A stretch of DNA of 64,000 nucleotides, taken from Leidyana gryllorum EB-2025a (Eukaryota; Protista; Apicomplexa). The position numbers and the translations under genes are program-made. Below the pieces are notes generated by a model. It saw only the letters and a program-made list of their open reading frames with translations, had not been told where the DNA came from and did no database searches. Below are positions 47,888 to 52,502 of this stretch, piece by piece; within the stretch, counting starts at the first letter, position 1; each line of letters opens with the position of its first letter. The stretch spans positions 101,360 through 165,359 of the forward strand of contig JBLWGC010000041.1 in NCBI GenBank assembly GCA_048772705.1. Reading direction: 5' to 3'.

Positions 47888-49177
47888 TCATGGCGCAGTA
47901 GGAGGGGTGGATTCACCATCACTGCTCCCTTTGGTGGAGTCAGTGGCCTTTTCATTTGCAGGCGACTGCTGTGGGGTGTGGAGAGTCAACAACTGGAGTG
48001 GCGGAGGGGTTGGGAGGGCCGTCGTCGAGCCTGGTGAAGTGTCTGTTGCCAGTGACTGCTGACAATGGTGGAGGAAGAGGTTGACATCTTCTTGGTGGGT
48101 GGCGAAGTGGGTCAAGAGTCTAGCGACTTTGAATCCACGCAGATTTGTGCAGTCCCCCAAGACGGTCTGATAGGCTTCGACAGGGTAGGAATAGAAAGAT
48201 ACGCCACTTTCGGTTAGGAACTCTATGACGCTGGTCGGCATGACGACAAAAATCTCATTAGCTTCAACCGGATACACTAAGGTAAATCCACAGAGGGACA
48301 CCATACCATCAGCAAGACAAGTGGCCATTGCATTGGCGTGACGGGCGCCCTTGATCCAGAGGTCGTCCTCTAAAAGAGCGGTGGCTTGGACCGATAGGAA
48401 GCGACATTTGGATACGAGCTGAGCGGCACGTTTCTGGCGGAGATCAATGCCCGTATTGAGTTTCTTGTCAAAAATGACAATTAGCTCCGACATCAGTGCT
48501 CCGGCCTTGGTGAGCCCCAGTGAAAGGGCGTCAACTCCAGCGCGCCAGGTCAAATCCGCTGGCGAACAATTGAGTTGAGCAATGGCATTCGCAAGTCTTG
48601 CACCATCCATGTGGACTTTGAGACCCAACATGTGAGCTGCATCACACAAAGCCTTCACTTCCTCGCAGGTATAGACAGTTCCCACTTCAGTACAATTCGT
48701 TATGGAGACGACGAGTGGAGGTGAACGGTGGACCGACGACGGGATGGAGTGAACGTGATTTATCAGCAGTTCAGGTGTGATTTTACCTTCCACTGTTGCC
48801 TTGATCGTCCTTATAACCTGACCACCGGTCAGGTACTCGGGAGCTCCACACTCGTCTGTGACAATGTGAGCGACATCAGTGCAACAAACGGCACCAATGT
48901 TCCCATTCAACAATTGCGCTAGCGCGATGCAGTTGGATGCAGTCCCAGTGCAAACAGCGTGACATTCCAGACTCTCATGCTCAAAGACACGTCGGACGTT
49001 GGATACCATTTCTTTGGTATACCGATCGGTTCCGTAGGCAGGACATGTCTCGTCGTTCTGATTGCACTGGGTAATCGCGGTGATTACGGCGGGCATGCAG
49101 CCAGCATTGTTATCCGAAGCGAACGCGAGGGTCCGACGCTTGTATTGGACCTGACGAGCAGATGGAGTGTAAACCAT
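47888..49177 (-). CDS. ltaE: Low-specificity L-threonine aldolase (PLP), intronless, bacterial LtaE-like
   Basis: FASDN, YGTD, TGTASN, AHI..DECGAPE, TEVGTVY, HMDGARLANA, LSLGLTK (PLP Lys) and SK.RF motifs. Confidence 0.93.
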   Translation of the reverse strand: MVYTPSARQVQYKRRTLAFASDNNAGCMPAVITAITQCNQNDETCPAYGTDRYTKEMVSNVRRVFEHESLECHAVCTGTASNCIALAQLLNGNIGAVCCTDVAHIVTDECGAPEYLTGGQVIRTIKATVEGKITPELLINHVHSIPSSVHRSPPLVVSITNCTEVGTVYTCEEVKALCDAAHMLGLKVHMDGARLANAIAQLNCSPADLTWRAGVDALSLGLTKAGALMSELIVIFDKKLNTGIDLRQKRAAQLVSKCRFLSVQATALLEDDLWIKGARHANAMATCLADGMVSLCGFTLVYPVEANEIFVVMPTSVIEFLTESGVSFYSYPVEAYQTVLGDCTNLRGFKVARLLTHFATHQEDVNLFLHHCQQSLATDTSPGSTTALPTPPPLQLLTLHTPQQSPANEKATDSTKGSSDGESTPPTAP

Positions 49178-49281
49178 GGGACAAACAGCAAAAATATTTA
49201 CCCACCATCGACAGAGAATTCGGTTAGTCGGCCCGTTGTCACACACTCATCTGAAAAGCGCACCAGGGTGCGCTCCACCGC

Positions 49282-49689
49282 TCATGCTGCCCCAAATATG
49301 TTCACAACCACACTACCCACGAGTATGAAACCCAGTCCCACAATGGCACCTGCATTCAACGGCTGCTTGAGAAAGACCAGTCCGATCACAGATGTAGCAG
49401 TAATTCCAACTGCGCACCAGGTTGCGTAGGCGATGCCCAGCGGCATAAAGGCGAGGACATAACCGAAAATCAAGTACGCTAAACTGTAGGCCACAACCAC
49501 TCCGAGGGTAGCCCACAGGACTGTGAACCTTTTTGATGCAGCCAATAATGACGTCCCCATCACTTCCAGGGATACAGCCAGTAACAGTAAACCCCACAAC
49601 ATCACCATACGCAGCGAATGTCCTCCGCCACCTTCTTTGGTGGCTACCTCCGTGACATCCACCTCCACAATCACACCAGCTGTTGACAT
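49282..49689 (-). CDS. Small multidrug resistance (SMR/EmrE-QacE-like) transporter
   Basis: Four TM helices, LAVSLEVMGTSLL (Glu14 equivalent), PLGIAYATW.AVG, TM4 G-x6-G motif; intronless. Confidence 0.92.
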   Translation of the reverse strand: MSTAGVIVEVDVTEVATKEGGGGHSLRMVMLWGLLLLAVSLEVMGTSLLAASKRFTVLWATLGVVVAYSLAYLIFGYVLAFMPLGIAYATWCAVGITATSVIGLVFLKQPLNAGAIVGLGFILVGSVVVNIFGAA

Positions 49690-49719
49690 TGGTCGGGTAG
49701 CGTCCCAAGCGAACAGAAA

Positions 49720-52502
49720 TCACACATTCCCAGCTATCAGACGCCGACGACTGAGAGCTTGAAGTCGAATGAAACCGGATTTGTGCTGTTCTACTTCGCG
49801 CCGAATCAGCTGCCGCTGCCACATAGACTGCACACACGAAACGCGCGACCTTCAATTTTCTCAAAGTGTTCAAATCTCACCTCCAATAAGACAACCAATG
49901 GCTCCCAAGCCGCCAGCGCTTGTCGCTGCGCGTGGGCCATGTCTTTCATGGCCTGGGGCTTCATGAAAACCATTGTCTTTCCGATCTTCCAGTCAGTCTC
50001 TGGGATCTTGGCACCCTTGAGCATGTCTCTGGAAGCTTCAGCGGGGTCGAGTGACGGGTCTTCGGCGAGTCCGAGGTTCACGAAGCGGTATTGGAAGAGG
50101 AACTCTTTATAGACACGTCTAATGGGAGGCAGGAAGAATCTGGGACGGTTGGGTCAAATCTAAACTCACCTGTAGGAGTAGCCGAGATTACGCAGCTGCA
50201 GGGCTTCGAGAATACTTAGAGACTGCAGCTGGATTAGAACTTTGGCTGGGTTGAATGTGAGGGCCTTCTTTTCTTCGTTGGGTTTGATGCATCGAATAAA
50301 GTGAGGTTCGGTTGCATTGATCAGCTCCATGAGAGCTGTCAGCTGATTCATGAACTGTGAGCCAATGAGTTGACCCTTGGCCGATTTGCCTTTCTCGACG
50401 ACGACACCTTCGTAGATTTTGCTGGTGACGCAGTTTTCCGACGCTTGGATGACTTCAATAAGCTCGGGTCTCAGTACATCCTTGTTCTTGAATAAGAATC
50501 CCGTAACAGTGTATTGGATGTCACCAATGGTGTGAGCGACAATAAAGTTCTGTTGCCCTCCAACTTTGGCTGGGAAGACCTTTTCGTTGCCCTTGAGGCC
50601 AGAGTAAAGTGCGCTAAGCATCTTCTCATCTGTGCCACCAGGGGCGAGACACTGATCTTCTAATATGGCCATAAAGGAGGCTTTCTTGGCTGTCAAAGCC
50701 GTGATAACTTCAGCGTTGGATGTGAAAATCAGATCAGCAGCGGGAATGCCTTCGTCTCGGTATAGTTTGGACTCCTTCTCGAATACAGTATCAGTGAAGT
50801 TCTTTTGAAGCATCTCATTGGTGACGTTAATGAACATCTGTTCAAGCGAGTTGTTCTTGAAGACCTCGAAACCAAAGATATCCAACATAGCCATGTAGTG
50901 CTTCCACTCAGGTGGCTCAATGTTAGAGTTTAGCTTCTTGATAATCCAGTGGAAAGTGGCATCAAACATAGCCTTGGCCAAGGAAGCTTTCAACATGTCA
51001 GCCTCGTCCTGCTTCCAGCAACCGCGGATCTCGTTACCTCCTGCAATACTAATCTTGACAGTCAGACCCTCTTCCGTCTTCGCGGCGTCCAAAAACAGCA
51101 ATTCGCAGGCCTGAAAGGGGAAGGACAAGAACGATGATAGACAGACCGACAGACAGATTGATCTTGAGCAGCCAACGGGGAACAGTGCTCAACTTACATC
51201 TAAGAAAGCTTGCCGCGACCCGGCATCGATCTCAGATGCGTCGCTCAAACCAGACTTAGCCACCCCATTGATTTTAACATTACCCATTAGAATCACACCT
51301 GCGTGAAAACAATGTGGGAGACACGATCGACGTGAGTGTGTGTACCAGAAACAATGGACATCACAGAATCCTTTTCGTCACGACTCATCATCATAGTGTC
51401 GAATGACTCTTGAACATCTGCCCATTCTTGCAGATCATCCTAGATACACTGAGTGATCTGCGCTGACACATACACACTCACAATTCCATCTGAATCCAAA
51501 CATTTGGGATTAATATAGTTGTAATCAGTAATCTTGAGTAACTTCCAGGCTTTTCGCTTCTCCGCATCAGCTCCCTTTAACATCTGATAGAAGATGTGGT
51601 AACTTCGCTCGGTGTCTTCCTGACACAAAATTCTCGACTTTTCCAGCAAGAAGCCACGGACAGATCCGAATTCGATACCACCGCCTTTGGCCACTTGCAG
51701 CTGCATGAAACGTCCGAAACGTGACGAGTTGTTGTTACGGATAGTCTTGGCGTTTCCAAAAGCTTCCAGCACGGGATTAGCAGCCATGATAGCTTTCTGT
51801 ACACGCAGATCAAGTGCTCCGGATTTGGCGGCGGCGAAAAATCGCATAGCTTGCTTGACAGCTTCGGTCTTCCCGGCACCCGATTCGCCCGACACAATAA
51901 TGGTTTGGGATTTGTGGACGGCGTGGAGGTTCTCCAGTGCCACACGGGTGATTCCGAACGTGTGAGGCGGTAATTTAGATACATCGCTCACATCGCGATA
52001 TTTGAGAATCCATTCATCCGTAGCATTCCCCAAGTTCTTGAAGGGATTGAGCACAGCCAATAGCGGATCAGCGGTGACGAAGATCATCCCTTGGTAAAGT
52101 CGTTGGCGCATAAAGTCCAGGATGCACGCATCGTTGGTATGGGGGATCATCCCAATGTCAGAGAACGACATTGGATCTACCTGGGAATTACAGTTGTAGG
52201 TCTGGGCTCGAGGTACTTCGAATTCTTCCCCATTCTCGGGCTCAACCTGACGTAGTTTGAGGGTATCTTCGGTGGAACCAGGGAGAACTAAACACTTCGC
52301 AAACAATTCCTCCGGATTCTCCTTCACCAAAGGTGCCTTGCGTGACCAAACATAAAACGCCTGAGCTGGATGACGGACAAGGCACAGATTATGAACGATC
52401 TACCTTGAAGACATTCCCCGAAGCATCCAGAGCATTCACAAGGGAATGAGCCCTCTCAGCAACCTTCTTTGTACCAGCTTTGGCCTTTGCCTTCGGAGGC
52501 AT
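49720..52502 (-). CDS. MyoA: Class XIV myosin A (glideosome motor)
   Basis: N-terminus ALDASGNVFK..VW...AP, P-loop GESGAGKT, NNNSSRFG, DIFGFE, tailless end RLQALSRRRL; multiple short introns. Confidence 0.95.

Follow-up and report, generated by a model that had tools for sequence, protein, structure and literature searches.

A Qac/EmrE-type SMR transporter gene of probable bacterial ancestry behind the myosin A gene of an apicomplexan parasite

In the 64,000-nucleotide stretch of Leidyana gryllorum DNA analysed here (the window), we have identified an intact ORF for a Qac/EmrE-type SMR protein that is packed between a myosin gene and a threonine-aldolase-like gene, both of which carry introns. 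With a probability of roughly 0.7, we consider it to be a functional transporter gene that was taken from a bacterium by an ancestor of the apicomplexan lineage; as for one part of this reading, namely that the gene is real, selected, integrated and of bacterial ancestry, we regard it as very likely. In textbooks, SMR transporters serve as the example of a minimal transporter with dual topology and antiparallel subunits, and the family is regarded as prokaryotic. The features of the locus are summarized in Table 1.

Table 1. Coordinates of the SMR gene and its neighbours in the window
Feature	Position	Strand	Structure and basis
Threonine-aldolase-like gene	47888..49208	(-)	ATG at 49206-49208; 55-nt intron at 49151-49205; exon 2 at 47888-49150
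Spacer between SMR stop and aldolase ATG	49209..49281	(-)	73 nt; unbroken in contigs X1 record 4 and X2 record 9
SMR ORF	49282..49689	(-)	135 codons and TGA stop, intronless; ORF list, Pfam, contig splice joints, selection
SMR core, residues 30-122	49324..49602	(-)	four transmembrane helices; whole Pfam model, AlphaFold2, Foldseek
N-terminal extension	49603..49689	(-)	about 28 residues, net acidic; outside the Pfam and EmrE alignments
Linker between myosin stop and SMR ATG	49690..49719	(-)	30 nt; open, in frame with both, 10 sense codons
Last myosin exon	49720..49827	(-)	IQ-like tail, TGA at 49720-49722; translation, and joint 49827 to 49881 (GT..AG) in three runs
Last myosin intron	49828..49880	(-)	53 nt; skipped in X1, X2 and X3

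The original prediction, which was made from the letters of the DNA, had described an intronless ORF with four transmembrane helices that can be aligned with EmrE, and this description was borne out when the proposed Pfam and BLASTP searches were run. In the contigs of relatives (see below), no splice joint falls inside the ORF, which is therefore taken to be intronless. Residues 30-122 of its product match the Pfam family PF00893 (Multi_Drug_Res) over the entire model (positions 1-93 of 93; E 2.8e-18) with a score of 66.6 bits, the curated gathering cut-off being 23.7. EmrE chains were the top matches in the PDB, where residues 38-132 were aligned with residues 10-104 of EmrE without any gap (E 1e-15), and BLASTP against the emrE gene of E. 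coli K-12 gave 36% identity over 98 residues, again with zero gaps. Furthermore, an AlphaFold2 model calculated with 27 homologues as input has a mean pLDDT of 89 (more than 90 in the core) and four predicted helices at residues 24-51, 58-81, 84-105 and 113-133. The top match of this model in Foldseek was EmrE (8uoz; rmsd 2.1 Å, target TM-score 0.83), followed by Gdx-Clo. An N-terminal extension of about 27 residues had also been predicted; relative to EmrE, the protein is indeed longer by 28-29 residues. The extension is modelled with low confidence (pLDDT 60-68) and is 21% identical to its shorter counterpart in L002, a 3.3-kb Logan contig that comes from an unrelated public run and represents a distant relative of the parasite. 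From the sequence, Met28 or Met30 could be the true start codon.

All of the residues to which the prediction had drawn attention were found, namely E42, the stretch P83-L-G-I-A-Y-A-T-W-C-A-V-G95 and the two glycines, G118 and G125. In the gap-free alignment, the glutamate in TM1 (E42) corresponds to E14 of EmrE, Y68 to Y40, the tyrosine switch (Y88) to Y60, the binding-site tryptophan (W91) to W63, and the glycines in TM4 (G118 and G125) to G90 and G97. No variation at Y88 or W91 is seen among the 27 homologues, at least 90% of which also conserve E42; reviews of the SMR family describe the glutamate, the tyrosine switch and the tryptophan, and likewise Y68 and the glycines in TM4, as mechanistically essential (PMC9574504, PMC7695847). 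The Gly-x-Gly fulcrum of TM3 reads Ala93-Val-Gly95 in the window protein and Gly-Ile-Ala in L002, and its first position is also variable among the nearest bacterial homologues. The site of Ser43 in EmrE is occupied by Ala71, and Ala is common at this site in the nearest bacterial homologues, too.

In terms of the SMR subtype, the Qac/EmrE models ranked first in NCBIfam with 58-72 bits, while the scores with MdtI, SugE/Gdx and MdtJ were 34.8, 30.1 and 20.7 bits (curated cut-offs: 103, 126 and 122, respectively). Since every NCBIfam score, including the best one (72.5 bits with a cut-off of 200), lies under its curated cut-off, the protein is the equivalog of no named pump. Gdx proteins are known to have a conserved Trp16, a site that is Gly or Ala in the Qac subtype (PMC7695847); in the SMR protein examined here, it is Gly45 (Glu-Val-Met-Gly-Thr, as compared with Glu-Val-Val-Trp-Ala in E. 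coli Gdx). The phylogeny of subtypes that had been proposed was also constructed, and in a tree of 74 rows, the protein was placed inside a 70-row group together with EmrE (support 91/91), with MdtI, MdtJ and Gdx of E. coli outside the group. Based upon the profile scores, Gly45 and the tree group containing EmrE, therefore, the protein is filed as Qac-like, and judging from these sequence features, its subtype is Qac/EmrE rather than that of the guanidinium exporters (Gdx) or the polyamine pumps (Mdt). The original prediction had proposed a toxin, guanidinium or polyamine as the substrate; the HMM scores and Gly45 favour the Qac/EmrE type but speak against the other two, and export of guanidinium or polyamine by this protein appears less likely.

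The gene was also predicted to lie 30 bp behind an intron-containing myosin A gene and hence to be physically integrated. Indeed, the ATG of the SMR ORF at 49687-49689 is located exactly 30 nt past the TGA of the upstream gene, which is a myosin with Myosin_head matches on two exons (E 1e-71 and 5e-72) and with introns backed by spliced contigs. On the other side, exon 2 of the aldolase gene matches Pfam Beta_elim_lyase (E 2.6e-40), where both neighbours were searched exon by exon (exon 2 of the aldolase and the exons of the myosin) and not as joined models. The joint of the aldolase intron, from 49148 to 49204 (cut +2, GT..AG, minus strand), was found in both X1 and X2. We noticed that the first coding exon of the aldolase gene is the ATG alone, followed by the 55-nt intron, and that this arrangement is also seen in L002; at the C-terminus, the aldolase-like protein ends in about 70 residues of low complexity.

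L002 repeats the gene order of the window (myosin tail, SMR, aldolase), and the proteins encoded are 63% (SMR) and 79% (aldolase) identical to those of the window. The position of the last myosin intron is also common to the two, with a length of 139 nt in L002 and 53 nt in the window. Positions 1-20 of L002 are a SMART-type cDNA amplification oligo, gtggtatcaacgcagagtac, and the myosin and aldolase introns are still present in this contig; its source may be RNA that had not been spliced, or else genomic DNA that entered a cDNA library.

In the sequencing-run index, no run shared more than one-tenth of the words of the window, and the runs used here (X1, X2 and X3 among them) represent close relatives. 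Contigs from four such runs of three studies, which are about 87-95% identical to the window, span both of the SMR junctions. In X2 record 9 (2269 nt), for example, the myosin and aldolase introns are removed, and the SMR ORF lies between the two genes. Because their introns are spliced out, these contigs are derived from RNA, and the stretch is therefore transcribed in close relatives; being contigs without RNA ends, strand or expression level, nonetheless, those crossing from gene to gene prove neither a single transcript nor a separate SMR mRNA. Some spliced myosin contigs end before or inside the SMR ORF (X1 record 5 at about 49695 and X3 record 11 at 49390), and these ends might be either 3' ends of the myosin mRNA or breaks in coverage.

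A typically prokaryotic family and an intronless ORF would bring to mind contamination by bacteria or chimerism of the assembly. Genes with spliceosomal introns are, however, present within 30 and 73 nt of the ORF, and the same order of the three genes recurs in L002 and in the contigs of the four runs. The GC and GC3 of the SMR ORF match those of its neighbours (GC3 of 0.54 compared with 0.55-0.60), and the identity of the protein to bacterial sequences does not exceed 50%. Contamination or chimerism is thus effectively excluded; the SMR gene is integrated in a eukaryotic chromosome, as had been claimed, and is adapted to the base composition of its host (amelioration).

The ORF is, furthermore, under strong purifying selection. 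Between the window and L002, pN of the SMR gene is 0.21 and pS is 0.77, which is saturated, giving a pN/pS of about 0.27, and the differences in the core are distributed over the codon positions 1/2/3 as 34/15/64; the first 27 residues, with their differing length and low identity, depart from this conservation. For comparison, pN and pS of the aldolase gene are 0.18 and 0.80. In the near relatives, 10 of the 11 differences listed inside the SMR ORF are synonymous, the remaining one replacing Val with Leu. An X1 contig with a depth of 3 has a 1-nt insertion at 49529 inside the ORF, and a deeper X2 contig lacks it; the insertion is probably an assembly error but may represent a frameshifted allele of the near relative. 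Such an insertion, together with the neighbours only 30 and 73 nt away and the RNA contigs that link the ORF to both of them, would speak for the ORF being an untranslated relic, in which an insert from a bacterium is decaying and acts only as the 3' UTR of the myosin or the 5' UTR of the aldolase. A relic would hardly be compatible with an ORF kept intact in two lineages with saturated synonymous sites, with the pN/pS ratio and the pattern of codon positions, with the predominance of synonymous changes in near relatives, or with the retention of all the catalytic residues, and the insertion itself is confined to the shallow contig. We thus consider decay of the ORF to be very unlikely.

The close spacing leaves hardly any room for a promoter or a poly(A) site of the gene's own, in either the 30 nt upstream or the 73 nt downstream. 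It is also the case that the SMR ORF is in frame with the last myosin exon both in the window (49687-49827) and in L002 (738-890), the two being separated by a single TGA and a few sense codons, 10 in the window and 14 in L002. The SMR domain might then be, at least in part, a C-terminal extension of myosin A that is produced by read-through of the TGA, resulting in a membrane-anchored motor. The linker peptides of the two species are, however, unrelated, and a nucleotide motif common to both, TTGGGACG, is found in different frames, from which we consider a read-through fusion to be unlikely. Also, the base following the myosin TGA is T, which is not known as a context promoting read-through, the residues for transport are conserved in spite of being needless for a mere anchor, and chance alone would bring the frames of two related species into agreement in somewhere between a few percent and tens of percent of cases. 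Taken together, a fused motor is highly improbable. More broadly, myosin A, SMR and aldolase might form one ultra-compact expression unit, in which reinitiation or read-through on a transcript that is polycistronic or overlapping yields the SMR protein, which functions as a dual-topology antiparallel homodimer in eukaryotic endomembranes; such a combination is speculative, and we hold it to be doubtful.

As regards the origin of the gene, the original prediction of horizontal acquisition agrees with the homologues retrieved. An exhaustive HMMER search of 1.8 billion cluster representatives gave 1465 matches, only one of which is more than 50% identical and is the syntenic relative; the next match shows 46% identity. 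For the homologues that we followed up, either the name or the gene neighbourhood is bacterial, as with Desulfovibrio, Bradymonas, loci linked to TetR and operons of paired SMRs. When 185,579 species genomes were scanned, the best named matches were from Kaistia, Brevundimonas, Rhizobium, Acinetobacter and Desulfovibrionaceae with 39-50% identity; the scan was based on a 7-row alignment, the peptide pattern of which favours Pseudomonadota among the named matches, and no donor is therefore drawn from them. A scan of JGI metagenomes with both of the parasite SMR proteins hit nothing closer than 43% identity. Matches with a long N-terminus were considered as candidates for eukaryotic proteins, but those looked up turned out to be over-called bacterial ORFs beside TetR and the like or members of paired SMR operons.

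In both of the trees constructed, the window and L002 proteins form a firm pair (support of 100 and 100/95). This parasite pair sits on a long stem of 0.57-0.99 changes per site with a weak sister (78/65), and bacterial classes are scattered in the tree. Because of the long stem without a supported sister, the transfer is considered to be old or its donor to be unsampled, and the tree names no donor. Bacterial ancestry is the best reading of these sequence comparisons, and the transfer would predate the split from the L002 relative, given the synonymous sites that are now saturated.

One protein from a metagenome deserves a separate description: P0147 (JGI metagenome 3300045300, 15.5-kb contig) belongs to the SMR family, and its N-terminus is extended by about 60 residues rich in Ser and Pro. 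Its gene lies between those for an 858-residue BCS1_N/AAA protein, a protein of 1978 residues and an LRR protein of 989 residues. This context looks eukaryote-like, and other eukaryotic SMRs may hence exist; in the tree, P0147 is far from the window protein and near paired bacterial SMRs. The long stem without a supported sister and the existence of P0147 would both be accommodated if the gene had been inherited vertically from an ancient eukaryotic SMR that was lost nearly everywhere else. Against such inheritance, nonetheless, the sole other cluster above 50% identity is the syntenic relative, P0147 is distant, and a survey published in 2023, which presented the SMRs of anaerobic gut fungi as the first eukaryotic ones, found none in other eukaryotes (PMC10443351). 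Vertical inheritance therefore appears scarcely probable, and in the literature, we found no report of an SMR from Apicomplexa or gregarines.

The aldolase-like gene also has bacteria as its nearest named relatives (Azospirillum, Rhodospirillales and Gammaproteobacteria; 42-49% identity). Acquisition of the SMR and aldolase genes as a cassette in one step was considered and gained no support, as an aldolase-like gene was present within about 2 kb at none of the 85 bacterial SMR loci.

Turning to the way in which the acquired transporter would work, SMR proteins act only as antiparallel dimers, and those encoded by single genes are dual-topology homodimers, in which the bias of Lys and Arg falls within about ±2 (PMC9574504). 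A paired SMR paralogue, for which a genome search had been suggested, was not found: in a six-frame search of the 15.5-Mb assembly, PF00893 matched only once, at 49324..49602 of the window, with no second SMR gene and hence no adjacent pair with opposite bias like MdtI/MdtJ. The Lys+Arg bias is -1 in the window protein (2 versus 3) and 0 in the L002 protein (2 versus 2). The single gene and the near-zero bias would thus agree with a dual-topology homodimer. Structure prediction for a homodimer with two copies of residues 28-135 gave a score of 0.02, which is neither for nor against dimerization.

We propose that two identical four-helix subunits would be inserted in opposite orientations to form an antiparallel homodimer, in which Glu42 would bind protons and these would be exchanged for a cation of the lipophilic or quaternary kind. 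As the dimer would be symmetric, the direction of transport would be set by the proton-motive force, and the cation could be cleared from the cytosol, whether by crossing the plasma membrane or by entering an acidic compartment. Such transport might serve for protection against cationic toxins or for export of a cationic metabolite. We put proton-coupled cation export as the activity of this protein at slightly better than even odds.

It is conceivable, alternatively, that the protein is functional but has a physiological role other than efflux of toxins, such as export or sequestration of an endogenous small cation (choline or betaine, polyamine, or guanidinium) or a task in an internal acidic organelle. 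EmrE itself is recorded in E. coli as a multidrug/betaine/choline efflux transporter, and substrates are known to overlap between SMR subtypes (PMC9574504). The parasite protein is the equivalog of no characterized pump, furthermore, and its neighbour, the aldolase, is an amino-acid-metabolizing enzyme that also looks bacterial. On the other hand, Gly45 at the Trp16 site of Gdx and the low scores with SugE/Gdx and MdtI/J argue against the guanidinium and polyamine types, the genome provides no partner subunit for an Mdt-like heterodimer, and aldolase genes are lacking within 2 kb of bacterial SMR loci (0/85). We consider an endogenous or organellar role to be rather unlikely, and the reading that we prefer remains a Qac/EmrE-type transporter of bacterial ancestry.

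Among the known SMR proteins, EmrE of E. coli (PDB 3b5d, 7mgx and 8uoz) is a close counterpart. Both are four-helix proteins with a core of about 105 residues, aligned gap-free with 36% identity, and the equivalents of Glu14, Tyr40, Tyr60, Trp63, Gly90 and Gly97, as well as of Gly17, are kept in the parasite protein. The predicted fold superposes on that of EmrE at 2.1 Å, and the single gene with its near-zero Lys+Arg bias would fit a dual-topology homodimer here as well. Unlike emrE, however, the gene examined here is in a eukaryotic chromosome between intron-bearing genes, and its product has a 28-residue acidic N-terminal extension, Ala in place of Ser43, and Ala-Val-Gly in TM3 instead of Gly-Val-Gly. 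With EmrE models, furthermore, the protein scores only 61-64 bits, far under the cut-offs of 162-226, and is thus not an orthologue of EmrE. Staphylococcal QacC/G/H/J (NF000384 and NF000277) gave the best scores of all the curated models, 70-72 bits over residues 34-134, but these are less than half of the cut-offs (160-200), and no specific kinship is seen in the tree. Gdx (SugE; Gdx-Clo, PDB 6wk5, and E. coli Gdx) has the fold (target TM-score 0.82) and the central Glu, Tyr and Trp in common with the protein but differs from it in the sequence (27% identity), the profile score (30.1 bits with the cut-off of 126) and the site of Trp16, which is Gly here.

For the SMRs of anaerobic fungi (Neocallimastix and Caecomyces), too, a bacterial source has been put forward; their positive charges are likewise balanced, and how dual topology would come about in the membrane of a eukaryote is a question that they share (PMC10443351). 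The proteins of the fungi are Gdx-like, the Trp16 site being Trp, and show 79-80% identity to proteins of rumen bacteria (PMC10443351), and because of this high identity, the fungal transfer is considered to be a recent and separate event. The parasite protein, in contrast, is Qac-like with Gly at the Trp16 site, and its identity to bacterial proteins reaches 50% at most. As the gene is common to two lineages with saturated synonymous divergence, the transfer to the apicomplexan would be independent of, and much older than, that to the fungi. As far as we could find in the literature, the apicomplexan is the second eukaryotic lineage with an SMR, the first with the Qac type, and the first case in a protist. 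An old and selected copy of the Qac type in an apicomplexan means that a eukaryote can retain an SMR protein over the long term, and the gene offers a natural test case for how the insertion machinery of the ER handles a protein that would be needed both ways round. Also, a candidate device for detoxification joins the bacterial genes adopted by this lineage of parasites, and its tight packing behind myosin A raises the testable question of how transcription and translation proceed in such genomes when genes lie so near to one another.
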